Below, piece by piece: positions 1,009 through 62,663 of a stretch of DNA of 64,000 bases; within the stretch, counting starts at the first letter, position 1, and every line of letters starts with the position of its first letter. The notes beneath the pieces were generated by a model. It was not told the DNA's origin, ran no database searches, and worked only from the letters and a program-made list of their open reading frames with translations. A program made the position numbers and the translations under genes. Source of the DNA: Octopus sinensis. Lineage: Eukaryota. The stretch lies in assembly GCF_006345805.1 (NCBI RefSeq), contig NW_021833014.1, forward strand, positions 1 through 64,000, given 5' to 3'.

Positions 1009-1049
1009 GAACAATCAAAATCAAATCATATATCAGAAAGCAGGGGTTA

Positions 1050-9827: not shown

Positions 9828-10047
9828 TATTCTTATCTGATCATTCACTGAATATGCTTAAAGAAACTGTAATTTCACTAAATAGAAAATCGTAAAACCT
9901 AAGTTAACCCCTTGTTTTGCATGTCCTGGTCACATGTAACATTAGTACCATTTCTTAAAATACTATTTCATGGACAGTTGTTGGCGGTGGCGTTTAATCG
10001 TGTGTCTGGTAAGTTATTTGGTTTCTTCTTGACCACTTCTTCCCCTC

Positions 10048-14720: not shown

Positions 14721-14783
14721 CTATGAAGGCGTTTCCCCTCTTTTGGAATTACAAAGGCAGCAGGCGAAGACGATGAGAAACAA
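14721..14783 (-). CDS. Tetraspanin coding exon 7 (end of TM4, C-tail): LFLIVFACCLCNSKRGETPS*
   Basis: Acceptor TTTCTATTTCAG|TTG; juxtamembrane CCLC palmitoylation cluster; TAG at 14723-14721. Confidence 0.9.
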   Translation of the reverse strand: MFLIVFACCLCNSKRGETPS

Positions 14784-17568: not shown

Positions 17569-17661
17569 CTGCACCACAATAATAACGATGGCAATACCAA
17601 TGGCTGTAGGGAGATTTATTTCGATAGTTTCTTTAACTTTTGTATAACAGCCTGGCCAATC
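17569..17661 (-). CDS. Tetraspanin coding exon 6: DWPGCYTKVKETIEINLPTAIGIAIVIIVVQ
   Basis: TCTTCAG|GAT ... CAG|GTATGT; 93 nt; conserved GC motif before TM4. Confidence 0.92.
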
Positions 17662-20973: not shown

Positions 20974-21039
20974 CATATTGTCACACCTGAAATTGTATTT
21001 AGCTACGTCTTCTGGCTTGTCAATACCACAACAACTGTT
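20974..21039 (-). CDS. Tetraspanin coding exon 5: NSCCGIDKPEDVAKYNFRCDNM
   Basis: TTTTTCCAG|AAC ... ATG|GTAAGA; 66 nt; contains the diagnostic CCG motif. Confidence 0.92.
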
Positions 21040-23655: not shown

Positions 23656-23748
23656 ATTTGTGAAGAGATTTGAAACAACCGCCTTCTGTTCAGGGCTTTT
23701 CGACTTCTCAAACAGTTCTTTTAGAGCGTCCTTTACAGTTTTCTCAAA
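23656..23748 (-). CDS. Tetraspanin coding exon 4 (large-loop helices): FEKTVKDALKELFEKSKSPEQKAVVSNLFTN
   Basis: CTTCCATTCTAG|TTT ... AAT|GTGAGT; 93 nt; open, amphipathic and directly precedes the CCG exon as in family gene structure. Confidence 0.88.
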
Positions 23749-23801
23749 CTAGAATGGAAGAAGTTTAGAAATATCTTCAATATATTTTCAATTTTCAATA
23801 A

Positions 23802-23970
23802 CATCATCATCATCATCATCGTTTAACGCCCACTTTCCATGCTAGCATGGGTTGGATGGTTTGACTGAGGGCTAGCGAACCAGAGGGCTGCATCAGGCAT
23901 CAGTCTTGATCTGGCAGAGTTTCTACAGCTGGATGCCCTTCCTAACGCCAACCACTTCAAGAGTGTAGTG
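23802..23970 (-). mobile_element. RTE 3' tail that seeds the satellite
   Basis: (CAT)6 CGTTTAACGCCCACTTTCCATGCTAGCATGGGTTGG...GAGTGTAGTGGGTGCTTTTAC runs directly into the array. Confidence 0.92.
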
Positions 23971-26900
23971 GGTGCTTTTACGTTCCACCAGCACAGGAGC
24001 CAGTCTGGTGACACTGGCAATGACCACGCTCAAATGGTGTTTTTATGTGCCACTGGCACAGTAGCCAGTCAGGCATCGACCATGCTCAAATGGTGCTTTT
24101 TACATGCCACTGGCACAGGAGCCAGTCTGGTAACACTGGCAACGATCATGCTCGAATGGTGCTTTTTACATGCCACTGGCAATGACCACACTTGAATGGT
24201 TTTTTATGTGTCACTGGCACAGGAGCCAGTCAGGCATCGACCATGCTCAAATGGTGCTATTTACATGCCACTGGCACAGGGCCAGTCTGGCAACACTGGC
24301 AACGATCATGCTCGAATGGTGCTTTTTACATGCCACTGGCAATGACCACACTTGAATGGTGTTTTTATGTGCCACTGGCACAGGAGCCAGTCAGGCATCG
24401 ACCATGCTCAAATGGTGCTTTTTACATGCCACTGGCACAGGAGCCAGTCTGGCAACACTGGCAACGATCATGCTCGAATGGTGCTTTTTACATGCCACTG
24501 GCAATGACCACACTTGAATGGTGTTTTTATGTGTCACTGGCACAGGAGCCAGTCAGGCATCGACCATGCTCGAATGGTGCTTTGTACATGCCACTGGTAA
24601 TGACCACACTTCAATGGTGTTTTTATGTGTCACTGGCACAGGAGCCAGTCAGGCATCGACCATGCTCAAATGGTGCTTTTTACATGTCACTGGCACAGGA
24701 GCCAGTCTGGTAACACTGGCAACGATCATGCTCGAATGGTGCTTTTTACATGCCACTGGCAATGACCACACTTGAATGGTGTTTTTATGTGTCACTGGCA
24801 CAGGAGCCAGTCAGGCATCGACCATGCTCGAATGGTGCTTTGTACATGCCACTGGTAATGACCACACTTGAATGGTGTTTTTATGTGTCACTGGCACAGG
24901 AGCCAGTCAGGCATCGACCATGCTCAAATGGTGCTTTTTACATGTCACTGGCACAGGAGCCAGTCTGGTAACACTGGCAACGATCATGCTCGAATGGTGC
25001 TTTTACATGCCACTGGCAATGACCACACTTGAATGGTGTTTTTATGTGTCACTGGCACAGGAGCCAGTCAGGCATCGACCATGCTCAAATGGTGCTTTTT
25101 ATGCCACTGGCACAGGGGCCAGTCTGGCAACACTGGCAACGATCATGCTCGAATGGTGCTTTTTACATGCCACTGGCAATGACACACTTGAATGGTGTTT
25201 TATGTGCACTGGCACAGTAGCCAGTCAGCCATCGACCATGCTCAAATGGTGCTTTTTACATGTCACTGGCACAGGAGCCAGTCTGGTAACACTGGCAACG
25301 ATCATGCTCGAATGGTGCTTTTTACATGCCACTGGCAATGACCACACTTGAATGGTGTTTTTTATGTTCACTGGCACAGGAGCCAGTCAGGCATCGACCA
25401 TGCTCAAATGATGCTTTTTACATGCCACTGGCACAGGGGCCAGTCTGGCAACACTGGCAACGATCATGCTCGAATGGTGCTTTTTACATGCCACTGGCAA
25501 TGACCACACTTGAATGGTGTTTTTATGTGCCACTGGCACAGTAGCCAGTCAGCCATCGACCATGCTCAAATGGTGCTTTTTACATGTCACTGGCACAGGA
25601 GCCAGTCTGGTAACACTGGCAACGATCATGCTCGAATGGTGCTTTTTACATGCCACTGGCAATGACCACACTTGAATGGTGTTTTTATGTGTCACTGGCA
25701 CAGGAGCCAGTCAGGCATCGACCATGCTCAAACGGTGCTTTTTACATGTCCACTGGCACAGGAGCCAGTCTGGTAACACTGGCAACGATCATGCTCGAAT
25801 GTGCTTTTTACATGCCACTGGCAATGACCACACTTGAATGGGTTTTTATGTGTCACTGGCACAGGAGCCAGTCAGGCATCGACCATGCTCAAATGGTGCT
25901 TTTACATGCCACTGGCAATGACCACACTTGAATGGGTTTTTATGTGCCACTGGCACAGGAGCCAGTCAGGCATCGACCTGCTCAAATGGTGCTTTTACAT
26001 GCCACTGGCACAGGGGCCAGTCTGGCAACACTGGCAACGATCATGCTCGAATGGTGCTTTTACATGCCACTGGCAATGACCACACTTGAATGGTGTTTTT
26101 ATGTGTCACTGACACAGGAGCCAGTCAGGCATCGACCATGCTCAAATGGTGCTTTTACATGCCACTGGCACAGGGGCCAGTCTGGCAACACTGGCAACGA
26201 TCATGCTCGAATGGTGCTTTTTTACATTGCCACTGGCAATGACCACACTTGAATGGTGTTTTTATGTGCCACTGGCACAGGAGCCAGTCAGGCATCGACC
26301 ATGCTCAAATGGTGCTTTTACATGCCACTGGCACAGGGGCCAGTCTGGCAACACTAGCAACGATCATGCTCGAATGGTGCTTTTTACATGCCACTGGCAA
26401 TGACCACACTTGAATGGTGTTTTTATGTGTCACTGGCACAGGAGCCAGTCAGGCATCGACCATGCTCAAATGGTGCTTTTACATGCCACTGGCACAGGGG
26501 CCAGTCTGGTAACACTGGCAACGATCATGCTCGAATGGTGCTTTTTACATGCCACTGGCAATGACCACACTTGAATGGTGTTTTTATGTGCACTGGCACA
26601 GGAGCCAGTCAGGCATCGACCATGCTCAATGGTGCTTTTTACATGCCACTGGCACAGGGGCCAGTCTGGCAACACTGGCACGATCATGCTCGAATGGTGC
26701 TTTTTACATGCCACTGGCAATGAACCACACTTGAATGGTGTTTTTATGTGCCACTGGCACAGTAGCCAGTCAGGCATCGACTATGCTCAAATGGTGCTTT
26801 TTACATGCCACTGGCACAGGAGCCAGTCTGGTAACACTGGCAACGATCATGCTCGAATGGTGCTTTTTACATGCCACTGGCAATGACCACACTTGAATGG

Positions 26901-29900
26901 TGTTTTTATGTGCCACTGGCACAGGAGCCAGTCAGGCATCGACTATGCACAAATGGTGCTTTTTACATGCCACTGGCACAGGAGCCAGTCTGGTAACACT
27001 GGCAACGATCATGCTCGAATGGTGCTTTTTACATGCCACTGGCAATGACCACACTTGAATGGTGTTTTTATGTGCCACTGGCACAGTAGCCAGTCAGCCA
27101 TCGACCATGCTCAAATGGTGCTTTTTACATGTCACTGGCACAGGAGCCAGTCTGGTAACACTGGCAACGATCATGCTCGAATGGTGCTTTTTACATGCCA
27201 CTGGCAATGACCACACTTGAATGTGTTTTTATGTGCCACTGGCACAGGAGCCAGTCAGGCATCGGCCATGCTCAAATGGTGCTTTTACATGCCACTGGCA
27301 CAGGAAACAGTCTGGTAACACTGGCAACGATCATGCTCGAATGGTGCTTTTTACATGCCACTGGCAATGACCCACTTGAATGGTGTGTTTTATGTGTCAC
27401 TGGCACAGGAGCCAGTCAGGCATCGACCATGCTCAAACGGTGCTTTTTACATGTCACTGGCACAGGAGCCAGTCTGGTAACACTGGCAACGATCATGCTT
27501 GAATGGTGCTTTTTACATGCCACTGGCAATGACCACACTTGAATGGTGGTTTTATGTGCCACTGGCACAGCAGCCAGTCAGGCATCGACCATGCTCGAAT
27601 GGTGCTTTTTACATGCCACTGGCAATGACCACACTTGAATGGTGTTTTTATGTGCCACTGGCACAGCAGCCAGTCAGGCATCGACCATGCTCGAATGGTG
27701 CTTTTTACATGCCACTGGCAATGACCACACTTGAATGGTGTTTTTATGTGTCACTGGCACAGGAGCCAGTCAGGCATCGACCATGCTCGAATGGTGCTTT
27801 TTACATGCCACTGGCAATGACCACACTTGAATGGTGTTTTTATGTGTCACTGGCACAGGAGCCAGTCAGGCATCGACTATGCTCAAATGGTGCTTTTTAC
27901 ATGCCACTGGCACAGGAGCCAGTCTGGTAACACTGGCAACGATCATGCTCGAATGGTGCTTTTACATGCCACTGGCAATGACCACACTTGAATGGTGTTT
28001 TTATGTGTCACTGGCACAGGAGCCAGTCTGGTAACACTGGCAACGATCATGCTCGAATGGTGCTTTTACATGCCACTGGCAATGACCACACTTGAATGGT
28101 GTTTTTATGTGTCACTGGCACAGGAGCCAGTCAGGCATCGACCATGCTCAAATGGTGCTTTTTACATGCCACTGGCAATGACCACACTTGAATGGTGTTT
28201 TTATGTGTCACTGGCACAGGAGCCAGTCTGGTAACACTGGCAACGATCATGCTCGAATGGTGCTTTTACATGCCACTGGCAATGACCACACTTGAATGGT
28301 GTTTTTATGTGCCACTGGCACAGGAGCCAGTCAGGCATCGACATGCTCAAATGGTGCTTTTTACATGCCACTGGCAATGACCACACTTGAATGGTGTTTT
28401 TATGTGTCACTGGCACAGGAGCCAGTCTGGTAACACTGGCAACGATCATGCTCGAATGGTGCTTTTACATGCCACTGGCAATGACCACACTTGAATGGTG
28501 TTTTTATGTGCCACTGGCACAGGAGCCAGTCAGGCATCGACCATGCTCAAATGGTGCTTTTTACATGCCACTGGCAATGACCACACTTGAATGGTGTTTT
28601 TATGTGTCACTGGCACAGGAGCCAGTCTGGTAACACTGGCAACGATCATGCTCGAATGGTGCTTTTTACATGCCACTGGCAATGACCACACTTGAATGGG
28701 GTTTTTATGTGTCACTGGCACAGCAGCCAGTCAGGCATCGGCCATGCTCAAATGTGCTTTTTACATGTCACTGGCACAGGAGCCAGTCTGGTAACACTGG
28801 CAACGATCATGCTCGAATGGTGCTTTTTACATGCCACTGGCAATGACCACACTTGAATGGTGTTTTTATGTGTCACTGGCACAGGAGCCAGTCAGGTATC
28901 GACCATGCTCAAATGGTGCTTTTTACATGCCACTGGCACAGGGGCCAGTCTGGCAACACTGGCAACGATTATGCTCGAATGGTGCTTTTTACATGCCACT
29001 GGCAATGACCACACTTGAATGTGTTTTTATGTGTCACTGGCACAGGAGCCAGTCAGGCATCGACCATGCTCAAATGGTGCTTTTACATGCCACTGGCACA
29101 GGGGCCAGTCTGGCAACACTGGCAACGATCATGCTCGAATGGTGCTTTTTACATGCACTGGCAATGACCACACTTGAATGGTGGTTTTTATGTGTCACTG
29201 GCACAGGAGCCAGTCAGGCATCGACCATGCTCAAATGGTGCTTTTTACATGCCACTGGCACAGGGGCCAGTCTGGCAACACTGGCAACGATCATGCTCGA
29301 ATGGTGCTTTTTACATGCCACTGGCAATGACCACACTTGAATGGTGTTTTTATGTGCCACTGGCACAGGAGCCAGTCAGGCATCGACCATGCTCAAATGG
29401 TGCTTTTTACATGCACTGGCACAGGGGCCAGTCTGGCAACACTGGCAACGATCATGCTCGAATGGTGCTTTTACATGCCACTGGCAATGACCACACTTGA
29501 ATGGTGTTTTTATGTGTCACTGGCACAGGAGCCAGTCAGGCATCGACCATGCTCAAATGGTGCTTTTACATGCCACTGGCACAGGGGCCAGTCTGGCAAC
29601 ACTGGCAACGATCATGCTCGAATGGTGCTTTTTACATGCCACTGGCAATGACCACACTTGAATGGTGTTTTTATGTGTCACTGGCACAGGAGCCAGTCAG
29701 GCATCGACCATGCTCAAATGGTGCTTTTTACATGCCACTGGCACAGGGGCCAGTCTGGCAACACTGGCAACGATCATGCTCGAATGGTGCTTTTTACATG
29801 CCACTGGCAATGACCACACTTGAATGGTGTTTTTATGTGTCACTGGCACAGGAGCCAGTCAGGCATCGACCATGCTCAAATGGTGCTTTTTACATGCCAC

Positions 29901-32900
29901 TGGCACAGGGGCCAGTCTGGCAACACTGGCAACGATCATGCTCGAATGGTGCTTTTTACATGCCACTGGCAATGACCACACTTGAATGGTGTTTTTATGT
30001 GCCACTGGCACAGTAGCCAGTCAGGCATCGACTATGCTCAAATGGTGCTTTTTACATGCCACTGGCACAGGAGCCAGTCTGGTAACACTGGCAACGATCA
30101 TGCTCGAATGGTGCTTTTTACATGCCACTGGCAATGACCACACTTGAATGGTGTTTTTATGTGCCACTGGCACAGGAGCCAGTCAGGCATCGACCATGCT
30201 CAAATGGTGCTTTTTACATGCCACTGGCACAGGAGCCAGTCTGGTAACACTGGCAACGATCATGCTCGAATGGTGCTTTTTACATGCCACTGGCAATGAC
30301 CACACTTGAATGGTGTTTTTATGTGTCACTGGCACAGGAGCCAGTCAGGCATCGACCATGCTCAAATGGTGCTTTTTACATGTCACTGGCACAGGAGCCA
30401 GTCTGGTAACACTGGCAACGATCATGCTCGAATGGTGCTTTTTACATGCCACTGGCATGACCACACTTGAATGGTGTTTTTATGTGCCACTGGCACAGGA
30501 GCCAGTCAGGCATCGGCCATGCTCAAATGGTGCTTTTTACATGCCACTGGCACAGGAGCCAGTCTGGTAACACTGGCAACGATCATGCTCGAATGGTGCT
30601 TTTTACATGCCACTGGCAATGACCACACTTGAATGGTGTTTTTATGTGTCACTGGCACAGGAGCCAGTCAGGCATCGACCATGCTCAAACGGTGCTTTTT
30701 ACATGTCACTGGCACAGGAGCCAGTCTGGTAACACTGGCAACGATCATGCTCGAATGGTGCTTTTTACATGCCACTGGCAATGACCACACTTGAATGGTG
30801 TTTTTATGTGTCACTGGCACAGGAGCCAGTCAGGCATCGACCATGCTCGAATGGTGCTTTTTACATGTCACTGGCACAGGAGCCAGTCTGGTAACACTGG
30901 CAACGATCATGCTCGAATGGTGCTTTTTACATGCCACTGGCAATGACCACACTTGAATGGTGTTTTTATGTGCCACTGGCACAGCAGCCAGTCAGGCATC
31001 GACCATGCTCAAACGGTGCTTTTTACATGTCACTGGCACAGGAGCCAGTCTGGTAACACTGGCAACGATCATGCTCGAATGGTGCTTTTTACATGCCACT
31101 GGCAATGACCACACTTGAATGGTGTTTTTATGTGTCACTGGCACAGGAGCCAGTCAGGCATCGACCATGCTCAAACGGTGCTTTTTACATGTCACTGGCA
31201 CAGGAGCCAGTCTGGTAACACTGGCAACGATCATGCTCGAATGGTGCTTTTACATGCCACTGGCAATGACCACACTTGAATGGTGTTTTTATGTGCCACT
31301 GGCACAGCAGCCAGTCAGGCATCGACCATGCTCGAATGGTGCTTTTTACATGCCACTGGCAATGACCACACTTGAATGGTGTTTTTATGTGTCACTGGCA
31401 CAGGAGCCAGTCAGGCATCGACCATGCTCGAATGGTGCTTTTTACATGCCACTGGCAATGACCACACTTGAATGGTGTTTTGATGTGTCACTGGCACAGG
31501 AGCCAGTCAGGCATCGACTATGCTCAAATGGTGCTTTTTACATGCCACTGGCACAGGAGCCAGTCTGGTAACACTGGCAACGATCATGCTCGAATGGTGC
31601 TTTTTACATGCCACTGGCAATGACTACACTTGAATGGTGTTTTTATGTGTCACTGGCACAGGAGCCAGTCAGGCATCGACCATGCTCAAAAGGTGCTTTT
31701 TACATGCCAGTGGCAATGACCACACTTGAATGGTGTTTTTATGTGTCACTGGCACAGGAGCCAGTCTGGTAACACTGGCAACGATCATGCTCGAATGGTG
31801 CTTTTACATGCCACTGGCAATGACCACATTGAATGGTGTTTTTATGTGTCACTGGCACAGCAGCCAGTCAGGCATCGGCCATGCTCAAATGGTGCTTTTT
31901 ACATGTCACTGGCACAGGAGCCAGTCTGGTAACACTGGCATCGACCATGCTCAAATGGTGCTTTTTACATGCCACTGGCAATGACCACACTTGAATGGTG
32001 TTTTTATGTGTCACTGGCACAGGAGCCAGTCTGGTAACACTGGCAACGATCATGCTCGAATGGTGCTTTTACATGCCACTGGCAATGACCACACTTGAAT
32101 GGTGTTTTTATGTGTCACTGGCACAGCAGCCAGTCAGGCATCGGCCATGCTCAAATGGTGCTTTTACATGCCACTGGCACAGGAGCCAGTCTGGTAACAC
32201 TGGCAACGATCATGCTCGAATGGTGCTTTTTACATGCCACTGGCAATGACCACACTTGAATGGTGTTTTTATGTGTCACTGGCACAGGAGCCAGTCAGGT
32301 ATCGACCATGCTCAAATGGTGCTTTTTACATGCCACTGGCACAGGAGCCAGTCTGGTAACACTGGCAACGATCATGCTCGAATGGTGCTTTTTACATGCC
32401 ACTGGCAATGACCACACTTGAATGGTGTTTTCATGTGCCACTGGCACAGGAGCCAGTCTGGTAACACTGGCAACGATCATGCTCGAATGGTGCTTTTTAC
32501 ATGCCACTGGCAATGACCACACTTGAATGGTGTTTTTATGTGCCACTGGCACAGGAGCCAGTCTGGTAACACTGGCAACGATCATGCTCGAATGGTGCTT
32601 TTTACATGCCACTGGCAATGACCACACTTGAATGGTGTTTTTATGTGTCACTGGCACAGGAGCCAGTCTGGTAACACTGGCAACGATCATGCTCGAATGG
32701 TGCTTTTTACATGCCACTGGCAATGACCACACTTGAATGGTGTTTTTATGTGTCACTGGCACAGGAGCCAGTCAGGTATCGACCATGCTCAAATGGTGCT
32801 TTTTACATGCCACTGGCACAGGAGCCAGTCTGGTAACACTGGCAACGATCATGCTCGAATGGTGCTTTTTACATGCCACTGGCAATGACCACACTTGAAT

Positions 32901-35900
32901 GGTGTTTTTATGTGTCACTGGCACAGGAGCCAGTCTGGTAACACTGGCAACGATCATGCTCGAATGGTGCTTTTTACATGCCACTGGCAATGACCACACT
33001 TGAATGGTGTTTTTATGTGCCACTGGCACAGGAGCCAGTCAGGCATCGGCCATGCTCAAATGGTGCTTTTTACATGCCACTGGCACAGGAGCCAGTCTGG
33101 TAACACTGGCAACGATCATGCTCGAATGGTGCTTTTTACATGCCACTGGCAATGACCACACTTGAATGGTGTTTTTATGTGTCACTGGCACAGGAGCCAG
33201 TCAGGTATCGACCATGCTCAAATGGTGCTTTTTACATGCCACTGGCACAGGAGCCAGTCTGGTAACACTGGCAACGATCATGCTCGAATGGTGCTTTTTA
33301 CATGCCACTGGCAATGACCACACTTGAATGGTGTTTTTATGTCCCACTGGCACAGGAGCCAGTCAGGCATCGGCCATGCTCAAATGGTGCTTTTTACATG
33401 ACACTGGCACAGGAGCCAGTCTGGTAACACTGGCAACGATCATGCTCGAATGGTGCTTTTTACATGCCACTGGCAATGACCACACTTGAATGGTGTTTTT
33501 ATGTGCCACTGGCACAGGAGCCAGTCAGGCATCGGCCATGCTCAAATGGTGCTTTTTACATGTCACTGGCACAGGAGCCAGTCTGGAACACTGGCAACGA
33601 TCATGCTCGAATGGTGCTTTTTACATGCCACTGGCAATGACCACACTTGAATGGTGTTTTTATGTGTCACTGGCACAGGAGCCAGTCAGGCATCGACCAT
33701 GCTCAAATGTGCTTTTTACATGTCACTGTCACCACGAAGCCAGTCTGGCACAGAACCAGTCTGGCAACACTGGCAACGATCATGCTCGAATGGTGCTTTT
33801 TACATGCCACTGGCAATGACCACACTTGAATGGTGTTTTTATGTCCACTGGCACAGGAGCCAGTCAGGCATCGACCATGCTCAAATGGTGCTTTTTACAT
33901 GCCACTGGCACAGGAGCCAGTCTGGTAACACTGGCAACGATCATGCTCGAATGTGCTTTTTACATGCCACTGGCAATGACGACACTTGAATGGTGTTTTT
34001 ATGTGTCACTGGCACAGGAGCCAGTCAGGTATCGACCATGCTCAAATGATGCTTTTTACATGCCACTGGCAATGACCACACTTGAATGGTGTTTTTATGT
34101 GTCACTGGCACAGGAGCCAGTCAGGCATCGACCATGCTCAAATGGTGCTTTTTACATGCCACTGGCAATGACGACACTTGAATGGTGTTTTTATGTGTCA
34201 CTGGCACAGGAGCCAGTCAGGTATCGACCATGCTCAAATGATGCTTTTTACATGCCACTGGCAATGACCACACTTGAATGGTGTTTTTATGTGCCACTGG
34301 CACAGCAGCCAGTCAGGCATCGGCCATGCTCAAATGGTGCTTTTTACATGCCACTGGCACAGGAGCCAGTCTGGTAACACTGGCAACGATCATGCTCGAA
34401 TGGTGCTTTTTACATGCCACTGGCAATGACCACACTTGAATGGTGTTTTTATGTGCCACTGGCACAGGAGCCAGTCAGGCATCGGCCATGCTCAAATGGT
34501 GCTTTTTACATGCCACTGGCACAGGAGCCAGTCTGGTAACACTGGCAACGATCATGCTCGAATGGTGCTTTTTACATGCCACTGGCAATGACCACACTTG
34601 AATGGTGTTTTTTTGTGCCACTGGCACAGGAGCCAGTCAGGCATCGGCCATGCTCAAATGGTGCTTTTTACATGTCACTGGCACAGGAGCCAGTCTGGTA
34701 ACACTGGCAACGATCATGCTCGAATGGTGCTTTTTACATGCCACTGGCAATGACCACACTTGAATGGTGTTTTTATGTGTCACTGGCACAGGAGCCAGTC
34801 AGGCATCGACCATGCTCAAATGGTGCTTTTTACATGTCACTGGCACAGAAGCCAGTCTGGCACAGAAGCCAGTCTGGCAACACTGGCAACGATCATGCTC
34901 GAATGGTGCTTTTTACATGCCACTGGCAATGACCACACTTGAATGGTGTTTTTATGTGCCACTGGCACAGGAGCCAGTCAGGCATCGACCATGCTCAAAT
35001 GGTGCTTTTTACATGCCACTGGCACAGGAGCCAGTCTGGTAACACTGGCAACGATCATGCTCGAATGGTGCTTTTTACATGCCACTGGCAATGACGACAC
35101 TTGAATGGTGTTTTTATGTGTCACTGGGACAGGAGCCAGTCAGGTATCGACCATGCTCAAATGATGCTTTTTACATGCCACTGGCAATGACCACACTTGA
35201 ATGGTGTTTTTATGTGTCACTGGCACAGGAGCCAGTCAGGTATCGACCATGCTCAAATGGTGCTTTTTACATGCCACTGGCAATGAACACACTTGAATGG
35301 TGCTTTTACATGCCACTGGCACAGGAGCCAGTCTGGTAACACTGGCAACGATCATGTTCGAATGGTGCTTTTTACATGCCACTGGCAATGACCACACTTG
35401 AATGGGGTTTTTATGTGTCACTGGCACAGGAGCCAGTCAGGTATCGACCATGCTCAAATGGTGCTTTTTACATGCCACTGGCACAGGAGCCAGTCTGGTA
35501 ACACTGGCAACGACCATGCTCGAATGGTGCTTTTTACATGCCACTGGCACAGGAGCCAGTCTGGTAACACTGGCAACGACCATGCTCGAATGGTGCTTTT
35601 TACATGCCACTGGCACAGGAGCCAGTCTGGTAACACTGGCAACGACCATGCTCAAATGGTGCTTTTTACATGCCACTGGCACAGGAGCCAGTCTGGTAAC
35701 ACTGGCAACGATCATGCTCGAATGGTGCTTTTTACATGCCACTGGCAATGACCACACTTGAATGGGGCTTTTTTGTGCCACTGGCACAGGAGCCAGTCAG
35801 ACATCGACCATGCTCAAATGGTGCTTTTTACATGCCACTGGCATGACCACACTTGAATGGTGTTTTTATGTGTCATTGGCACAGGAGCCAGTCAGGTATT

Positions 35901-47900: not shown

Positions 47901-50900
47901 CCACGGCAATGACGACACTTGAATGGTGTTTTTATGTGTCACTGGCACAGGAGCCAGTCAGGCATCGACCATGCTCAAATGGTGCTTTTTACATGCCACT
48001 GGCAATGACGACACTTGATGGTGTTTTTATGTGTCACTGGCACAGGAGCCAGTCAGGCATCGACCATGCTCAAATGGTGCTTTTTACATGCCACTGGCAT
48101 GACGACACTTGAATGGTGTTTTTATGTGTCACTGGCACAGGAGCCATCAGGCATCGACCATGCTCAATGGTGCTTTTTACATGCCACTGGCAATGACGAC
48201 ACTTGAATGGTGTTTTTATGTGTCCACTGGCACAGGAGCCAGTCAGGCATCGACCATGCTCAAATGGTGCTTTTTACATGCCACTGGCAATGACGACACT
48301 TGAATGGTGTTTTTTATGTGTCACTGGCACAGGAGCCAGTCAGGCATCGACCATGCTCAAATGGTGCTTTTTACATGCCACTGGCAATGACCACACTTGA
48401 ATGGTGTTTTTATGTGTCACTGGCACAGGAGCCAGTCAGGCATCGACCATGCTCAAATGGTGCTTTTTACATGCCACTGGCAATGACGACACTTGAATGG
48501 TGTTTTTATGTGTCACTGGCACAGGAGCCAGTCAGGCATCGACCATGCTCAAATGGTGCTTTTTTACATGCCACTGGCAATGACCACACTTGAATGGTGT
48601 TTTTATGTGTCACTGGCACAGGGGCCAGTCAGCATCGACCATCGCTCGAATGGTGCTTTTTACATGCCACTGGCAATGACCACACTTGAATGGTGTTTTT
48701 ATGTGTCACTGCACACAGGAGCCAGTCAGGCATCGACCATGCTCAAATGGTGCTTTTTACATGCCACTGGCATGACCACACTTGAATGGTGTTTTTTATG
48801 TGTCACTGGCACAGGAGCCAGTCAGGCATCGACCATGCTCAAATGGTGCTTTTTACATGCCACTGGCAATGACGACACTTGAATGGTGTTTTTATGTGTC
48901 ACTGGCACAGGAGCCAGTCAGCATCGACCATGCTCAAATGGTGCTTTTACATGCCACTGGCAATGACCACACTTGAATGGTGTTTTTTATGTGTCACTGG
49001 CACAGGAGCCAGTCAGGCATCGACCATGCTCAAATGGTGCTTTTTACATGCCACTGGCAATGACGACACTTGAATGGTGTTTTTATGTGTCACTTGGCAC
49101 AGGAGCCAGTCAGGCATCGACCATGCTCAAATGGTGCTTTTTACATGCCACTGGCAATGACGACACTTGAATGGTGTTTTTTATGTTCACTGGCACAGGA
49201 GCCAGTCAGGCCTCGACCATGCTCGAATGGTGCTTTTTACATGCCACTGGCAATGACCACACTTGAATGGTGTTTTATGTGTCACTGGCACAGGAGCCAG
49301 TCAGGCATCGACCATGCTCAAATGGTGCTTTTTACACTGCCACTGGCAATGACCACACTTGAATGGTGTTTTTATATGTGTCACTGGCACAGGAGCCATC
49401 AGGCATCGACCATGCTCAAATGGTGCTTTTTACATGCCACTGGCAATGACACACTTGAATGGTGTTTTTATGTGTCACTGGCACAGGAGCCAGTCAGGCA
49501 TCGACCATGCTCAATGGTGCTTTTTACATGCCACTGGCAATGACGACACTTGAATGGTGTTTTTATGTGTCACTGGCACAGGAGCCAGTCAGGCATCGAC
49601 CATGCTCAAATGGTGCTTTTTACATGCCACTGGCAATGACCACACTTGAATGGTGTTTTTATGTGTCACTGGCACAGGAGCCAGTCAGGCATCGACCATG
49701 CTCAAATGGTGCTTTTTACATGCCACTGGCAATGACCACACTTGAATGGTGTTTTTATGTGTCACTGGCACAGGAGCCAGTCAGGCATCGACCATGCTCA
49801 AATGGTGCTTTTTACATGCCACTGGCAATGACCACACTTGAATGGTGTTTTATGTGTCACTGGCACAGGAGCCAGTCAGGCATCGACCATGCTCAATGGT
49901 GCTTTTTACATGCCACTGGCAATGACGACACTTGAATGGTGTTTTTATTGTGTCACTGGCACAGGAGCCAGTCAGGCATCGACCATGCTCAAATGTGCTT
50001 TTTACATGCCACTGGCAATGACCACACTGAATGGTGTTTTTATGTGTCACTGGCACAGGAGCCAGTCAGGCATCGACCATGCTCAAATGGTGCTTTTTAC
50101 ATGCCACTGGCAATGACGACACTTGAATGGTGTTTTTATGTGTCACTGGCACAGGAGCCAGTCAGGCATCGACCATGCTCAAATGGTGCTTTTTACATGC
50201 CACTGGCAATGACGACCTTGAATGGTGTTTTTATGTGTCACTGGCACAGGAGCCAGTCAGGCATCGACCATGCTCGAATGGTGCTTTTTACATGCCACTG
50301 GCAATGACCACACTTGAATGGTGTTTTTTATGTGTCACTGGCACAGAGCCAGTCAGGCATCGACCATGCTCAAATGGTGCTTTTTACATGCCACTGGCAA
50401 TGACCACACTTGAATGGTGTTTTTATGTGTCACTGGCACAGGAGCCAGTCAGGCACGACCATGCTCAAATGGTGCTTTTTACATGCCACTGGCAATGACG
50501 ACACTTGAATGGTGTTTTTATGTGTCACGGCACAGGAGCCAGTCAGGCATCGACCATGCTCAAATGGTGCTTTTTACATGCCACTGGCAATGACGACACT
50601 TGAATGGTGTTTTTATGTGTCACTGGCACAGGAGCCAGTCAGGCATCGACCATGCTCAAATGGTGCTTTTTACATGCCACTGGCAATGACCACACTTGAA
50701 TGGTGTTTTATGTGTCACTGGCACAGGAGCCAGTCAGGCATCGACCTGCTCAAATGGTGCTTTTTACATGCCACTGGCAATGACCACACTTGAATGGTTT
50801 TTTATGTGTCACTGGCACAGGAGCCAGTCAGGCATCGACCATGCTCAAATGGTGCTTTTTACATGCCACTGGCAATGACCACACTTGAATGGTGTTTTTA

Positions 50901-53900
50901 TGTGTCACTGGCACAGGAGCCAGTCAGGCATCGACCATGCTCAAATGGTGCTTTTTACATGCCACTGGCAATGACGACACTTGAATGTTTTTTTATGTGT
51001 CACTGGCACAGGAGCCAGTCAGGCATCGACCATGCTCAAATGGTGCTTTTTACATGCCAGTGGCAATGACCACACTTGAATGGTGTTTTTATGTGTCACT
51101 GGCACAGGAGCCAGTCAGCATCGACCATGCTCAAATGGTGCTTTTTACATGCCACTGGCAATGACCACACTTGAATGGTGTTTTTATGTGTCACTGGCAC
51201 AGAGCCAGTCAGGCATCGACCATGCTCAAATGGTGCTTTTTACATGCCACTGGCAATGACCACACTTGAATGGTGTTTTTATGTGTCACTGGCACAGGAG
51301 CCAGTCAGGCATCGACCATGCTCAAATGGTGCTTTTTACATGCCACTGGCAATGACGACACTTGAATGGTGTTTTTATGTGTCACTGGCACAGGAGCCAG
51401 TCAGGCATCGACCATGCTCAAATGGTGCTTTTTACATGCCCCCTGGCAATGACCACACTTGAATGGTGTTTTTATGTGTCACTGGCACAGGAGCCAGTCA
51501 GGCATCGACCATGCTCAAATGGTGCTTTTTACATGCCACTGGCAATGACCACACTTGAATGGTGTTTTATGTGTCACTGGCACAGGAGCCAGTCAGGCAT
51601 CGACCATGCTCAATGGTGCTTTTTACATGCCACTGGCAATGACCACACTTGAATGGTGTTTTTATGTGTCACTGGCCTGGCACAGGACCAGTCAGGCATC
51701 GACCATGCTCAATGGTGCTTTTTACATGCCACTGGCAATGACGACACTTGAATGGTGTTTTTATGTGTCACTGGCACAGGAGCCAGTCAGGCATCGACCA
51801 TGCTCAAATGGTGCTTTTTCATGCCACTGGCAATGACCACACTTGAATGGTGTTTTGTTTGTGTCACTGGCACAGGAGCCAGTCAGGCATCGACCATGCT
51901 CAAATGGTGCTTTTTACATGCCACTGGCAATGACCACACTTGAATGGTGTTTTTATGTGTCACTGGCACAGGAGCCAGTCAGGCATCGACCATGCTCAAA
52001 TGGTGCTTTTTACATGCCACTGGCAATGACCACACTTGAATGGTGTTTTTTATGTGTCACTGGCACAGGAGCCAGTCAGGCATCGACCATGCTCAAATGG
52101 TGCTTTTTACATGCCACTGGCAATGACCACACTTGAATGGTGTTTTTTATGTGTCACTGGCCAGGAGCCAGTCAGGCATCGACCATGCTCAAATGGTGCT
52201 TTTTACATGCCACTGGCAATGACCACACTTGAATGGTGTTTTTATGGTCCACTGGCACAGGAGCCAGTCAGCATCGACCATGCTCAAATGGTGCTTTTTA
52301 CATGCCACTGGCAATGACCACACTTGAATGGTGTTTTATGTGTCACTGGCACAGGCCAGTCAGGCATCGACCATGCTCAAATGGTGCTTTTTACATGCCA
52401 CTGGCAATGACGACACTTGAATGGTGTTTTTATGTGTCACTGGCACAGGAGCCAGTCAGGCATCGACCATGCTCAAATGGTGCTTTTTACATGCCACTGG
52501 CAATGACCACACTTGAATGGTGTTTTTATGTGTCACTGGCACAGGAGCCAGTCAGCATCGACCATGCTCAAATGGTGCTTTTTACATGCCACTGGCAATG
52601 ACCACACTTGAATGGTGTTTTTATGTGTCACTGGCACAGGAGCCAGTCAGGCATCGACCATGCTCAAATGGTGCTTTTTACATGCCACTGGCAATGACCA
52701 CACTTGAATGGTGTTTTATGTGTCACTGGCACAGGAGCCAGTCAGGCATCGACCATGCTCAAATGGTGCTTTTTACATGCCACTGGCAATGACCACACTT
52801 GAATGGTGTTTTTATGTGTCACTGGCACAGGAGCCAGTCAGGCATCGACCATGCTCAATGGTGCTTTTTACATGCCACTGGCAATGACCACACTTGAATG
52901 GTGTTTTTATGTGTCACTGGCACAGGAGCCAGTCAGGCATCGACCATGCTCAAATGGTGCTTTTTACATGCCACTGGTAATGACCACACTTGAATGGTGT
53001 TTTTATGTGTCACTGGCACAGGAGCCAGTCAGGCATCGACCATGCTCAAATGGTGCTTTTTACATGCCACTGGTAATGACCACACTTGAATGGTGTTTTT
53101 ATGTGTCACTGGCACAGGAGCCAGTCAGGCATCGACCATGCTCAAATGGTGCTTTTTACATGCCACTGGTAATGACCACACTTGAATGTGTTTTTATGTG
53201 TCACTGGCACAGGAGCCAGTCAGCATCGACCATGCTCAAATGGTGCTTTTTACATGCCACTGGCATGACCACACTTGAATGGTGTTTTTATGTGTCACTG
53301 GCACAGGAGCCAGTCAGGCATCGACCATGCTCAAATGGTGCTTTTTACATGCCACTGGTAATGACCACACTTGAATGGTGTTTTTATGTGTCACTGGCAC
53401 AGGAGCCAGTCAGGCATCGACATGCTCAAATGGTGCTTTTTACATGCCACTGGCAATGACCACACTTGAATGGTGTTTTTTATGTGTCACTGGCACAGGA
53501 GCCAGTCAGGCATCGACCATGCTCAAATGGTGCTTTTTACATGCCACTGGCAATGACCACACTTGAATGTGTTTTTATGTGTCACTGGCACAGGAGCCAG
53601 TCAGGCATCGACCATGCTCAAATGGTGCTTTTTACATGCCACTGCAATGACCACACTTGAATGGTGTTTTTATGTGTCACTGGCACAGGAGCCAGTCAGG
53701 CATCGACCATGCTCAAATGTGCTTTTTACATGCCACTGGCAATGACCACACTTGAATGGTTTTTTTATGTGTCACTGGCACAGGAGCCAGTCAGGCATCG
53801 ACCATGCTCAAATGGTGCTTTTTACATGCCACTGGCAATGACCACACTTGAATGGTGTTTTTATGTGTCACTGGCACAGGAGCCAGTCAGCATCGACCAT

Positions 53901-56900
53901 GCTCAAATGGTGCTTTTTACATGCCACTGGCAATGACCACACTTGAATGGTGTTTTTATGTGTCACTGGCACAGGAGCCAGTCAGGCATCGACCATGCTC
54001 AAATGGTGCTTTTTACATGCCACTGGCAATGACCACACTGAATGGTGTTTTTATGTGTCACTGGCACAGGAGCCAGTCAGGCACGACCATGCTCAAATGG
54101 TGCTTTTTACATGCCACTGGCAATGACCACACTTGAATGGTGTTTTTATGTGTCACTGGCACAGGAGCCAGTCAGGCATCGACCATGCTCAAATGGTGCT
54201 TTTTACATGCCACTGGCAATGACCACACTTGAATGGTGTTTTTTGTGTCACTGGCACAGGAGCCAGTCAGGCATCGACCATGCTCAAATGGTGCTTTTTA
54301 CATGCCACTGGCAATGACCACACTTGAATGGTGTTTTTATGTGTCACTGGCACAGGAGCCAGTCAGGCATCGACCATGCTCAAATGGTGCTTTTTACATG
54401 CCAGTGGCAATGACCACACTTGAATGGTGTTTTTATGTGTCACTGGCACAGGAGCCAGTCAGGCATCAACCATGCTCGAATGGTGCTTTTTACATGCCAG
54501 TGGCAATGACCACACTTGAATGGTGTTTTTTTGTGTCACTGGCACAGGAGCCAGTCAGGCATCGACCATGCTCAAATGGTGCTTTTTACATGCCACTGGC
54601 AATGACCACACTTGAATGGTGTTTTTATGTGTCACTGGCACAGGAGCCAGTCAGGCATCGACCATGCTCAAATGGTGCTTTTTACATGCCACTGGCAATG
54701 ACCACACTTGAATGGTGTTTTTATGTGTCACTGGCACAGGAGCCAGTCAGGCATCGACCATGCTCAAATGGTGCTTTTTACATGCCACTGGCAATGACCA
54801 CACTTGAATGGTGTTTTTATGTGTCACTGGCACAGGAGCCAGTCAGGCATCGACCATGCTCAAATGGTGCTTTTTACATGCCACTGGCAATGACCACACT
54901 TGAATGGTGTTTTTATGTGTCACTCTGGCACAGGAGCCAGTCAGGCATCGACCATGCTCAAATGGTGCTTTTTACATGCCACTGGCAATGACCACACTTG
55001 AATGGTGTTTTTATGTGTCACTGGCACAGGAGCCAGTCAGGCATCGACCATGCTCAAATGGTGCTTTTTACATGCCACTGGCAATGACCACACTTGAATG
55101 GTGTTTTTATGTGTCACTGGCACAGGAGCCAGTCAGGCATCGACCATGCTCAAATGGTGCTTTTTACATGCCACTGGCAATGACCACACTTGAATGGTGT
55201 TTTTATGTGTCACTGGCACAGGAGCCAGTCAGGCATCGACCATGCTCAAATGGTGCTTTTTACATGCCACTGGCAATGACCACACTTGAATGGTGTTTTT
55301 ATGTGTCACTGGCACAGGAGCCAGTCAGGCATCGACCATGCTCAAATGGTGCTTTTTACATGCCACTGGCAATGACCACACTTGAATGGTGTTTTTGTGT
55401 CACTGGCACAGGAGCCAGTCAGGCATCGACCATGCTCAAATGGTGCTTTTTACATGCCACTGGCAATGACGACACTTGAATGGTGTTTTTATGTGTCACT
55501 GGCACAGGAGCCAGTCAGGCATCGACCATGCTCAAATGGTGCTTTTACATGCCACTGGCAATGACCACACTTGAATGGTGTTTTTATGTGTCACTGGCAC
55601 AGGAGCCAGTCAGGCATCGACCATGCTCAAATGGTGCTTTTTACATGCCACTGGCAATGACGACACTTGAATGGTGTTTTTATGTGTCACTGGCACAGGA
55701 GCCAGTCAGGCATCGACCATGCTCAAATGGTGCTTTTTACATGCCACTGGCAATGACGACACTTGAATGGTGTTTTTATGTGTCCACTGGCACAGGAGCC
55801 AGTCAGGCATCGACCATGCTCAAATGGTGCTTTTTACATGCCACTGGCAATGACCACACTTGAATGGTGTTTTTATGTGTCACTGGCACAGGAGCCAGTC
55901 AGGCATCGACCATGCTCAAATGGTGCTTTTTACATGCCACTGGCAATGACCACACTTGAATGGTGTTTTTATGTGTCACTGGCACAGGAGCCAGTCAGGC
56001 ATCGACCATGCTCAAATGGTGCTTTTTACATGCCACTGGCAATGACCACACTTGAATGGTGTTTTTATGTGTCACTGGCACAGGAGCCAGTCAGGCATCG
56101 ACCATGCTCAATGGTGCTTTTTACATGCCACTGGCAATGACCACACACTTGAATGTGTTTTTATGTGTCACTGGCACAGGAGCCAGTCAGGCATCGACCA
56201 TGCTCAAATGGTGCTTTTTACATGCCACTGGCAATGACCACACTTGAATGGTGTTTTTATGTGTCACTGGCACAGGAGCCAGTCAGGCATCGACCATGCT
56301 CAAATGGTGCTTTTTACATGCCACTGGTAATGACCACACTTGAATGGTGTTTTTATGTGTCACTGGCACAGGAGCCAGTCAGGCATCGACCATGCTCAAA
56401 TGGTGCTTTTTACATGCCACTGGTAATGACCACACTTGAATGGTGTTTTTATGTGTCACTGGCACAGGAGCCAGTCAGGCATCGACCATGCTCAATGGTG
56501 CTTTTTACATGCCACTGGTAATGACCACACTTGAATGGTGTTTTTATGTGTCACTGGCACAGGAGCCAGTCAGGCATCGACCATGCTCAAATGGTGCTTT
56601 TTACATGCCACTGGTAATGACCACACTTGAATGGTGTTTTTTATGTTCACTGGCACAGGAGCCAGTCAGGCATCGACCATGCTCAAATGGTGCTTTTTAC
56701 ATGCCACTGGTAATGACCACACTTGAATGGTGTTTTTATGTGTCACTGGCACAGGAGCCAGTCAGGCATCGACCATGCTCAAATGGTGCTTTTACATGCC
56801 ACTGGCAATGACGACACTTGAATGGTGTTTTTATGTGTCACTGGCACAGGAGCCAGTCAGGCATCGACCATGCTCAAATGGTGCTTTTTACATGCCACTG

Positions 56901-59105
56901 GCAATGACCACACTTGAATGGTGTTTTTATGTGTCACTGGCACAGGAGCCAGTCGGCATCGACCATGCTCAATGGTGCTTTTTACATGCCACTGGCAATG
57001 ACCACACTTGAATGGTGTTTTTATGTGTCACTGGCACAGGAGCCAGTCAGGCATCGACCATGCTCAAATGGTGCTTTTTACATGCCACTGGCAATGACCA
57101 CACTTGAATGGTGTTTTTATGTGTCACTGGCACAGGAGCCAGTCAGGCATCGACCATGCTCAATGGTGCTTTTTACATGCCACTGGCAATGACCACACTT
57201 GAATGGTGTTTTTATGTGTCACTGGCACAGGAGCCAGTCAGGCATCGACCATGCTCAAATGGTGCTTTTTACATGCCACTGGCAATGACCACACTTGAAT
57301 GGTGTTTTTATGTGTCACTGGCACAGGAGCCAGTCAGGCATCGACCATGCTCAAATGGTGCTTTTTACATGCCACTGGCAATGACCACACTTGAATGGTG
57401 TTTTTATGTGTCACTGGCACAGGAGCCAGTCAGGCATCGACCATGCTCAATGGTGCTTTTTACATGCCACTGGCAATGACCACACTTGAATGGTGTTTTT
57501 ATGTGTCACTGGCACAGGAGCCAGTCAGGCATCGACCATGCTCGAATGGTGCTTTTTACATGCCACTGGCAATGACCACACTTGAATGGTGTTTTTTATG
57601 TGTCACTGGCACAGGAGCCAGTCAGGCATCGACCATCGACCATGCTCAAATGGTGCTTTTTACATGCCACTGGCAATGACCACACTTGAATGGTGTTTTT
57701 ATGTGTCACTGGCACAGGAGCCAGTCAGGCATCGACCATGCTCAAATGGTGCTTTTACATGCCACTGGCACAGGAGCCAGTCTGTAACACTGGCAACGAT
57801 CATGCTCGAATGGTGCTTTTTACATGCCACTGGCAATGACCACACTTGAATGGTGTTTTTATGTGTCACTGGCACAGGAGCCAGTCAGGCATCGACCATG
57901 CTCAAATGTGCTTTTTACATGCCACTGGCACAGGAGCCAGTCTGGTAACACTGGCAACGATCATGCTCGAATGGTGCTTTTTACATGCCACTGGCAATGA
58001 CCACCACTTGAATGGTGTTTTTATGTGCCACTGGCACAGGAGCCAGTCAGGCATCGACCATGCTCAAATGGTGCTTTTTACATGCCACTGGCAATGACCA
58101 CACTTGAATGGTGTTTTTATGTGCACTGGCACAGGAGCCAGTCAGGCATCGACCATGCTCAAATGGTGCTTTTTACATGCCATTGGCACAGGAGCCAGTC
58201 TGGTACACTGGCAACGATCATGCTCGAATGGTGCTTTTACATGCCACTGGCAATGACCACACTTGAATGGTGTTTTTATGTGCCACTGGCACAGGAGCCA
58301 GTCAGGCATCGACCATGCTCAAATGGTGCTTTTTACATGCCACTGGCAATGACCACACTTGAATGTGTGTTTTTATGTGCACTGGCACAGGAGCCAGTCA
58401 GGCATCGACCATGCTCAAATGGTGCTTTTTACATGCCATTGGCACAGGAGCCAGTCTGGTAACACTGGCAACGATCATGCTCGAATGGTGCTTTTTACAT
58501 GCCACTGCAATGACCACACTTGAATGGTTTTTTTATGTGCCACTGGCACAGGAGCCAGTCAGTATCGACCATGCTCAAATGGTGCTTTTTACATGCCACT
58601 GGCACAGGAGCCAGTCTGGTAACACTGGCAACGATCATGCTCGAATGGTGCTTTTTACATGCCACTGGCAATGACCACACTTGAATGGTGTTTTTATGTG
58701 CCACTGGCACAGGAGCCAGTCAGGCATCGACCATGCTCAAATGGTGCTTTTTACATGCCATTGGCACAGGAGCCAGTCTGGTAACACTGGCAACGATCAT
58801 GCTCAAATGGTGCTTTTACATGCCACTGGTAATGACCACACTTGAATCGTGTTTTTATGTGCCACTGGCACAGGAGCCAGTCAGGCATCGACCATGCTCA
58901 AATGGTGCTTTTTACATGTCACTGGCACAGGAGCCAGTCTGGTAACACTGGCAACGATCATGCTCGAATGGTGCTTTTTACATGCCACTGGCAATGAACA
59001 CACTTGAATGGTGTTTTTATGTGCCACTGGCACAGGAGCCAGTCAGGCATCGACCATGCTCAAATGGTGCTTTTTACATGCCACTGGCACAGGAGCCAGT
59101 CAGTG
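23970..59105. repeat. ~35-kb tandem satellite built from subunits A (56 bp), B (66 bp) and C (40 bp); main units ABC = 162 bp and AC = 96 bp
   Basis: 96-mer: TTGAATGGTGTTTTTATGTGTCACTGGCACAGGAGCCAGTCAGGCATCGACCATGCTCAAATGGTGCTTTTTACATGCCACTGGCAATGACCACAC. Periods measured: 29820->29982 (162) and 32420->32525 (105-bp variant); 32-aa ORF periodicity in the core. Confidence 0.98.
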
Positions 59106-59221
59106 GCTCCGGCAACAATCACTGATAAAAAAAGTGAACATAAAACAAGATATGTAATAAATTAAAACTGGATTCATTTGTATCAAAAATAATCAGGTTT
59201 TTCTTAATTAATTCTAATTAC

Positions 59222-59296
59222 CTTTGGCCGAGCCACAACGATCATTACGAAGACAGCAACTTGTAGAGCAAGGATAATGGTCATTATTGTACTGTA
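59222..59296 (-). CDS. Tetraspanin coding exon 3 (TM3): YSTIMTIILALQVAVFVMIVVARPK
   Basis: TTTATTTTCCAG|TAC ... AAG|GTAATT; 75 nt; hydrophobic helix with a polar Q at the conserved E/Q position. Confidence 0.92.
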
Positions 59297-62276: not shown

Positions 62277-62504
62277 TGTTCCAAGCATCCAGATGTTCTC
62301 TTTCCATGTTCCAAAGCAACCGAAGAATGCAATAAATACAGCAACAACAGATGCAATTATCAGAACGATGGCAGCAGCCTTAATCGTCTCATTATCAAAG
62401 CCATCAAGAACACCTTCAATTTTAATTTCGTCAAGCCCCTCTAGTAAAAGGTCCTTTCTAGCCAGCAAGACGCTTCCGAGGGCAACACCAGCAATACCCA
62501 AGAT
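62277..62504 (-). CDS. Tetraspanin coding exon 2 (TM1 end, small loop, TM2): ILGIAGVALG...FIAFFGCFGTWKENIWMLGT
   Basis: TTTTTCAG|ATC ... ACA|GTGAGT; 228 nt; FFGCFG...KEN motif typical of tetraspanin TM2 and the inner loop. Confidence 0.95.
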
Positions 62505-62597
62505 CTGAAAAAAAAATAAAATCATTGCAGAATTGGTAACTGATCGTCAAGTAAAACAATTTAATGACAATTTTTAAATATGTAAAATTCTACTTAC

Positions 62598-62663
62598 AAA
62601 GATGATCAAATTAAAGAAAAAAAGAATATATTTCATACAGTTTTCTGAAGATCCACCATCCAT
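62598..62663 (-). CDS. Tetraspanin coding exon 1: MDGGSSENCMKYILFFFNLIIF
   Basis: CAAAATGG start context; CMKY..FFFNL.F motif; TTT|GTAAGT donor. A possible acceptor at 62677 suggests a further upstream 5' UTR exon. Confidence 0.93.

Follow-up and report, generated by a model that had tools for sequence, protein, structure and literature searches.

By the time a satellite DNA is studied, its founding event has usually been lost, its birth lying far in the past. The origin of satellites from tandem repeats located in the 3' untranslated regions (3' UTRs) of retroelements, or in other parts of transposons, is well documented (PMC9659126, PMC7004042, PMC4079207, PMC7492417): hypervariable 3' UTR minisatellites gave rise to long arrays attached to element remains in PisTR-A, derived from the Ogre element of pea, and in the Lathyrus satellites derived from long terminal repeat (LTR) retrotransposons (PMC9659126, PMC7004042); the monomers of the common cetacean satellite (L1 3' end) and of the chicken HinfI repeat (CR1 3' UTR and open reading frame 2, ORF2) show homology to the 3' portion of a long interspersed nuclear element (LINE) (PMC9659126); and internal repeats seeded the arrays of the foldback transposon Tetris and the related Drosophila virilis satellite (PMC4079207), and those of the Pacific oyster Helentrons (PMC7492417). 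Introns consisting almost entirely of tandem repeats, inside intact genes that appear to be spliced, are found in kl-3 and kl-5 of the Drosophila Y chromosome (PMC6508621). These traits come together in intron 3 of a tetraspanin gene of Octopus sinensis, which lies in the first 64 kb (64,000 nucleotides, here called the window) of contig VCDQ01000572.1 (85,297 bp; assembly GCA_006345805.1). We propose, with a probability of about 0.8, that the minisatellite of a LINE fragment was amplified locally into a young intronic array by the stepwise history set out below; the evidence comes from homology, junctions shared between species, intron sizes in three species, the higher-order structure of the array, the existence of two array versions and the intactness of the host gene. 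A literature search on octopus satellite DNA found nothing specific.

The window was compared with three other O. sinensis loci (L006, contig VCDQ01000450.1; L007 and L008, chromosome CM016861.1 at 5.998 and 5.889 Mb, 110 kb apart) and with the orthologous loci of Octopus vulgaris (L009, OX597816.1) and Octopus bimaculoides (L002, CM046603.1); LINE copies and deletion junctions were compared over ~330 kb of octopus DNA. Intron 3 occupies positions 23749-59221 of the minus strand (35,473 nt, 74% of the gene span), between the donor GT at 59221-59220 and the acceptor AG at 23750-23749, exactly where a preliminary description of this DNA had placed it, and with the unique ends of 53 and 99 nt given there. 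The remaining 99% of the intron is LINE-derived, and the LINE fragment is in the sense orientation with respect to the tetraspanin. Starting from the acceptor, the intron is composed of the unique 53 nt (23749-23801), containing the branch-point and polypyrimidine region and laid out identically in O. vulgaris; (GAT)6G, the microsatellite that closes the LINE at its 3' end (23802-23820), with the same terminus at window 1878-1903 and L007 1527-1550; the non-repeated, ~160-nt tail of an RTE-like LINE (23821-23982), homologous to window 1724-1877 and to many copies in the O. bimaculoides locus; the array itself (23983-59081, 35.1 kb); a 5'-truncated monomer, m0, which is the 5' end of the LINE fragment (59082-59122) and whose truncation point is common to O. 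vulgaris and O. bimaculoides; and the donor-proximal unique 99 nt (59123-59221), conserved at L009 43892-43990 and L002 13757-13858.

Greedy edit-distance tiling with three consensus units assigned 691 monomers to the array (293 A of 39-40 bp, 282 C of 56-57 bp and 116 B of 66 bp), leaving gaps that total 61 nt. The types differ from each other by deletions of 9-26 bp plus substitutions. Tandem Repeats Finder reported a single unbroken array from ~23,970 to 59,101, with a period of 162 over 24012-43105, of 96 over 42966-57770 (154.5 copies, 96% matches) and of 161 over 58305-59101. On the plus strand the order runs from (BAC)n with irregular stretches, through 152 AC dimers, to a mixture of BAC and AC units, and four domains on the minus-strand intron can be delimited: a tail-proximal domain (23983-33563) of 181 monomers, mainly 162-bp BAC trimers with irregular stretches; a mixed domain (33564-43001) of BAC, AC, BBBB and other combinations; a homogeneous dimer block of 152 x 96 bp (A+C; 43,002-57,563) with ~98% identity to its consensus, in which the recurrence of one C-to-G variant pattern points to duplications of ~20 dimers; and an exon-3-adjacent domain (57564-59081) of 162-bp trimers and 96-bp dimers with the plus-strand pattern ...ABACBACBACACBACACBACBACBACBAC. 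The array thus comprises hundreds of head-to-tail copies with higher-order organisation (91-97% matches for the 162-bp unit, 96-97% for the 96-bp unit). Its GC content is flat (0.48-0.50), compared with 0.35-0.45 in the flanks.

The array monomers match the 61-66-bp 3' UTR repeats of LINE copies at window 1056-1723 and 18927-19449, L002 5139-5461 and L009 49399-50197. In the reference copy (window 1-1903, plus strand) the C-terminus of ORF2 (YADD, a PHD-like finger, GRPRKTW) ends at a stop codon (1005-1007) and is followed by a 3' UTR in which 11 copies of a 61-bp monomer (1056-1723) precede the tail and (GAT)8. The array is also physically continuous with LINE remains, the tail and (GAT)6 (23802-23982) at one end and the truncated monomer (59082-59122) at the other. 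Since the monomers, the tail and (GAT)n all match a LINE in which the ORF2 end and stop are located just upstream, the array monomers are, judged by homology, the variable minisatellite of the LINE 3' UTR, and the intron copy is a 5'-truncated, dead-on-arrival fragment; the preliminary description had been right in deriving the array from tandem subunits of one sense LINE 3' fragment. A 3.35-kb copy of this LINE in L007 has a 671-aa ORF matching RVT_1 and PHD, and the same 3' end as the window copy; homologues of the ORF are single proteins of ~1,050 aa, with endonuclease (PF03372), reverse transcriptase (PF00078) and PHD domains, on contigs of 3.2-4 kb. Every intact LINE 3' end examined has (GAT)6-8 in place of poly(A). 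The parent is classified as an RTE-like LINE, a label given on architecture alone, and its other copies in the ~330 kb of octopus DNA compared have at most 13 monomers. A tRNA-derived short interspersed element head was also considered as the parent and left no sign.

Two full-length (~3.4 kb) insertions of this same RTE-like LINE were observed, at L007 1527-4888 and at L009 58537-61960 (the site corresponding to window 9877-9895), each of them carried by a single copy or species, with a counterpart 98-99.6% identical that lacks it. Because full-length insertions are present or absent between near-identical counterparts, the parent family has been active within the last 2.5 million years (My), and it is abundant and still active. 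In intron 5, another orthologous LINE 3' UTR contains ~8 copies of 62 bp in O. sinensis (window 18927-19449) and 12.9 in O. vulgaris (L009 49399-50197), a difference that, as read from the two sequences, shows ordinary small-scale minisatellite instability.

The sizes of the orthologous intron, whose comparison had been proposed in advance, form a series: O. bimaculoides has 1,780 bp, O. vulgaris 834 bp and the two O. sinensis versions 21,052 and 35,473 bp. The O. bimaculoides intron has the LINE fragment at the common junction (L002 13859), ~100 nt past exon 3, with ~5.6 monomers, all of them of the full-length 66-bp form, the tail and (GAT)4. Between this (GAT)n and the final 55 nt of the intron, O. 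bimaculoides has an extra 1.1 kb (L002 14388-15481), composed of unique sequence and two other repeats, which is found neither in O. sinensis nor in O. vulgaris, a difference due either to deletion along one lineage or to insertion along the other. In O. vulgaris, the same 5' junction (L009 about 44011) is followed by m0, C-A-B, C-A-B, two diverged monomers, the tail, (GAT)6 and, next to exon 4, the 53 nt seen in O. sinensis, giving 2.3 copies of the 162-bp trimer; the flanks are 97.8% and 98.7% identical to the window and collinear up to the array edges. Paralogy had been considered on account of the 87% identity of the O. vulgaris protein, and was rejected: flanks so similar and collinear mean orthologues with fast protein evolution.

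The species splits are placed at 2.5 My for O. vulgaris versus O. sinensis and at ~34 My from O. bimaculoides (quoted in PMC10700109). Since the junction is common to the three species and O. vulgaris is unexpanded, the insertion dates back ~34 My or more and the expansion no more than ~2.5 My; and because both deletion-type monomers and 2.3 trimers are present in O. vulgaris, they predate the split of that species from O. sinensis. The hundreds of copies are, on the available orthologues, specific to O. sinensis. The preliminary description was accordingly right that the expansion is young; the insertion is not, since the LINE fragment is common to O. bimaculoides and hence old. Nor did the growth start from an intron of ~150 bp, as had been supposed: the immediate ancestor measured ~0.8 kb and already contained the LINE fragment and 2.3 trimers, and a pre-insertion length of 150 bp remains unproven because the O. 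bimaculoides intron has another 1.1 kb.

The same series bears on a different order of events, in which both species inherited a large array, the expansion being older than 2.5 My, and O. vulgaris lost most of it by contraction, or its Oxford Nanopore Technologies (ONT) assembly collapsed it. Arrays are shortened by unequal exchange as easily as they are lengthened, and O. vulgaris, represented by a single assembly, already has both deletion-type monomers and two trimers. Against this, the two diverged tail-proximal monomers of O. vulgaris (v7 and v8) are fused into one in O. sinensis, so that the O. vulgaris state looks the less rearranged; O. bimaculoides is unexpanded; and the collapse of >20 kb to 0.5 kb would be unexpected in a long-read assembly. 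We consider such an ancestral array quite unlikely.

The origin of the monomer types can be followed at the level of single deletions. A is the 66-bp unit minus 26 bp between CACTGGCA...CACTGGCA direct repeats, and C is the 66-bp unit minus 9-10 bp between TGG...TGG direct repeats; the diagnostic deletion junctions, CACTGGCAATGACCACAC and GCCAGTCAGGCATCGACC, were found, within the ~330 kb compared, only in intron 3. Deletion between these repeats had been proposed in the preliminary description and is readable in the sequence, while the single B ancestor assumed there is the less likely origin: C has 3 mismatches in 55 positions against the second O. bimaculoides monomer (m2) and 6 in 56 against B, small counts in both cases, and the order m0-C-A-B parallels m1-m2-m3-m4 of O. 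bimaculoides, A being too short to decide its ancestry. Because C is nearer to m2 and the order is parallel, the three types probably go back to monomers that were neighbours in the ancestral copy, not to a single B unit.

The history that we propose for the local amplification would have begun more than ~34 million years ago, when a 5'-truncated RTE-like LINE would have inserted in sense orientation ~100 nt downstream of exon 3, leaving only the end of its 3' UTR (a few 66-bp monomers, the 160-nt tail and (GAT)n). In the ancestor that O. vulgaris shares with O. sinensis, two adjacent monomers would have been shortened between short direct repeats, by 9-10 bp and by 26 bp, and the resulting 56+40+66 = 162-bp trimer would then have been duplicated in that same ancestor. 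After the split ~2.5 My ago, the lineage leading to O. sinensis would have accumulated hundreds of trimer copies via out-of-register recombination or replication slippage, and in one haplotype a 96-bp dimer (the trimer minus its 66-bp member) would have reached ~150 copies. We infer this mechanism of amplification from the higher-order units, from the combination of a shared old end with a variable young end, from the duplications of ~20 dimers and from the presence of one monomer fewer near the tail than in O. vulgaris.

The shared old end and the variable young end are seen when the O. sinensis copies are compared. The 90%-identity cluster of the host protein contains two further O. sinensis models, and exons 1-3 with the array occur four times in the assembly, three of these copies being within 0.15-0.22% substitutions of each other and one 1.4% diverged upstream, a multiplicity that may reflect tandem duplication or haplotype redundancy. 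L006 is a complete gene with an intron 3 of 21,052 bp and 389 monomers (A 140, C 131, B 118), without the dimer block; from the tail side, its first 181 monomers are in the same order as in the window (99.2% identity), and large indels appear beyond them, in the mixed domain. The flanks of L006 differ from those of the window by 0.16% downstream and by 1.3% upstream. L007 and L008 contain exons 1-3 together with 9.9 kb or more of array, with the monomer order and plus-strand pattern of the exon-3 end of the window, and 12 substitutions separate L008 from the window over 14.8 kb. The variation in length that had been anticipated in the preliminary description is therefore seen, in the form of assembled copies of 35.5 and 21.1 kb.

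The redundancy of these copies also speaks for an assembly artefact, that is, an array far shorter than 35 kb, or exons 3 and 4 misjoined through an over-extended or duplicated satellite. The contig is unplaced, like many in this assembly, the locus occurs four times, 5.2% of BUSCOs are duplicated, and the monomers contain numerous small homopolymer indels. The contig start is an inverted copy of another stretch (window 1-3664 versus 8113-9877, 98.2% identical), the inverted copy having a LINE insertion that the direct copy lacks, in an arrangement like that of O. vulgaris; it may be either a chimeric end from the other haplotype or a true inverted duplication, and the first of these would add to the suspicion. 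On the other side, two separate contigs span exon 3, array and exon 4 with flanks collinear with O. vulgaris; the irregular monomer order is shared by L006 and the window for 181 monomers and by L007, L008 and the window for 203; and in contig-to-contig alignments substitutions amount to 0.1-0.2% in register (99.8-99.9% identity), compared with 1.7% (98.3% identity) when shifted by one 96-bp repeat. That the array is reproducible in register between contigs speaks against random assembler noise, and an artefact seems to us a quite unlikely explanation of it. Users of the O. sinensis assembly should be cautious about its redundancy in this region.

The host gene, on the minus strand, encodes a tetraspanin (NCBI model XP_029655875.2, 'CD53-like') with a PF00335 match over residues 11-219 (E = 4.9e-36), four transmembrane helices and, in the large loop, a CCG motif. 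By homology to the O. bimaculoides protein there are seven coding exons, all open, separated by phase 0 introns with GT..AG ends, in agreement with the intact splice sites and exons reported in the preliminary description: exon 1 (62598-62663, with the ATG at 62663; homology and splice context), exon 2 (62277-62504; first transmembrane helix, small loop, second helix and the GCFGTWKEN motif), exon 3 (59222-59296; 25 codons encoding the third helix, YSTIM...VVARPK, found by tblastn and splice context), exon 4 (23656-23748; 31 codons, where the large extracellular loop begins), exon 5 (20974-21039; CCG motif), exon 6 (17569-17661; homology and splice context) and exon 7 (14721-14783; stop codon), which is absent from the NCBI model and was located via O. 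bimaculoides homology. The NCBI model (212 aa) runs past the exon 6 donor into the intron (17569-17554); with the last exon found by homology (14783-14721) the protein has 227 aa, as in O. bimaculoides, and ends in CCLCNSKRGETPS. Intron 1 (window 62505-62597, 93 nt) differs from that of O. bimaculoides (L002 10067-10156) by 4 substitutions and a 3-nt indel only, with a synonymous divergence of 0.22 in the flanking exons between the two species, and it may be under constraint.

Coding differences separating the O. sinensis gene from its O. vulgaris counterpart affect 27 of 684 sites (window exons 62663-14721 versus L009 40431-53702), 23 of them nonsynonymous and 4 synonymous (Nei-Gojobori dN 0.045, dS 0.027, omega 1.66). 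The noncoding divergence at the locus is 1.27%, so that dN is ~3.5 times the noncoding rate and the coding excess is significant (Fisher p = 1e-6); 19 of the 24 polarisable changes are derived on the O. sinensis branch (p = 0.007). This excess of nonsynonymous change on the O. sinensis branch indicates that the host gene is not decaying, and the tetraspanin appears, from these counts, to be under positive selection in the lineage of the intron expansion. O. vulgaris exon 5 (L009 47699-47765) has an extra A (TTTCAAGG versus TTTCAGG) that shifts the frame, and both annotated O. vulgaris proteins stop or leave the frame there; it may be either a true disabling mutation or an ONT assembly error.

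A functional array, selected to delay or tune tetraspanin expression by acting as an intronic timer or by giving rise to regulatory RNA, has in its favour this intact gene, whose protein shows faster than neutral evolution in the O. sinensis lineage, and the avoidance of poly(A) and donor motifs: strong donor motifs are missing from the sense strand of the array, and across its 35 kb the hexamers AATAAA or ATTAAA occur only 4 times. The lack of poly(A) signals, however, was inherited from the monomer of the LINE 3' UTR; lengths of 21 and 35 kb coexist; the structure is the one expected from unequal exchange without selection; and 35 kb would add only minutes of transcription. A selected function is thus very unlikely, and the delay or tuning of expression suggested in the preliminary description might at most be conjectured. 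A related idea is that the array, having arisen in <2.5 My at the locus that also gained several near-identical assembled copies and the burst of amino-acid change, is not a neutral passenger and alters the expression or splicing of a fast-adapting surface protein; we give it very little credence, although, if true, a repeat-laden intron could feed O. sinensis/O. vulgaris divergence or hybrid incompatibility, Y-linked gigantic genes having been implicated in Drosophila hybrids (PMC12965833). We rather infer that the array is a passenger, either neutral or mildly deleterious. Its one certain effect, given the gene structure, is a primary transcript ~35 kb longer; transcription probably passes through it harmlessly, and nothing in the intron suggests a need for special processing. 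The O. vulgaris annotation of the same gene has a 30-kb first intron, comparable in length to the 35-kb array.

Other properties of the array were also recorded. Antisense ORFs of up to 255 aa occur in it (plus strand, window 44463-45230 and 54233-54991) because 96 and 162 are multiples of three, and the 255-aa ORF of the dimer block had no match in the protein collection. Scans of the window for tRNAs and Rfam families returned nothing, and the folding of the 162-nt unit gave a modest gain in stability (z = -2.06 versus shuffles) that supports no structural claim.

Several points weigh against the local amplification of the LINE minisatellite by the history proposed here. All the O. sinensis copies were drawn from a single assembly, which we take to be of the PacBio era, and the exact array lengths are unverified because that one assembly is redundant and contains unplaced contigs; the short O. 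vulgaris intron is likewise known from one ONT assembly. Allelic differences, paralogy, or assembler variation and duplicated haplotigs could each account for the two versions of 21 and 35 kb. The O. sinensis protein cluster contained no transcript-derived member and the transcript contigs in the collection searched were from O. bimaculoides only (L003-L005), so that the splicing of exon 3 to exon 4 in O. sinensis is a prediction from the gene structure. The burst of amino-acid change in the lineage of the expansion means, furthermore, that the locus may not be evolving neutrally.

All the stages of satellite formation are preserved at this one locus (the founding LINE fragment, an unmodified outgroup, a two-copy seed and two expanded versions), giving a dated series, at ~34 My and 2.5 My, from a retrotransposon minisatellite to a higher-order satellite. 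The introns of 0.8 kb and of 21-35 kb are in addition a natural pair for asking whether a repeat-filled intron alters transcription or splicing.

Primate alpha satellite is organised in higher-order repeats, multi-monomer units that are more alike than their member monomers, with homogeneous young blocks beside older mixed ones. The octopus array shares both features, but its types differ mainly by deletions (40, 56 and 66 bp), and the array is tiny and non-centromeric. Compared with PisTR-A and the Lathyrus satellites (PMC9659126, PMC7004042), the parent in the octopus is a non-LTR LINE, the array is confined to a single intronic locus instead of being dispersed or heterochromatic, and the starting state is visible in the sister species. 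The cetacean and chicken satellites are old and genome-wide, and their origin was deduced from similarity alone (PMC9659126), whereas in the octopus the founding insertion, the junctions and the unexpanded orthologues can all be seen. Tetris (PMC4079207) and the Helentrons (PMC7492417) are DNA transposons whose arrays were spread to many loci by transposition; in the octopus, one dead LINE fragment grew in place. The introns of kl-3 and kl-5 reach hundreds of kb to Mb of simple satellites (PMC6508621), whereas the octopus array consists of 35 kb of complex, 40-66-bp monomers with, as far as the sequence tells, no sign of dedicated processing, and is located on a large chromosome, ~6 Mb from its end, unlike the Drosophila Y genes; the comparison with Drosophila intron gigantism made in the preliminary description was thus too strong, 35,473 nt being one to two orders of magnitude below megabase introns. 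The mechanism of satellite birth was already known, and the locus is a new, unusually well-resolved and datable example of it, with an RTE-like LINE parent, a cephalopod host, a location in the intron of an intact gene and a sister species that retains the seed.

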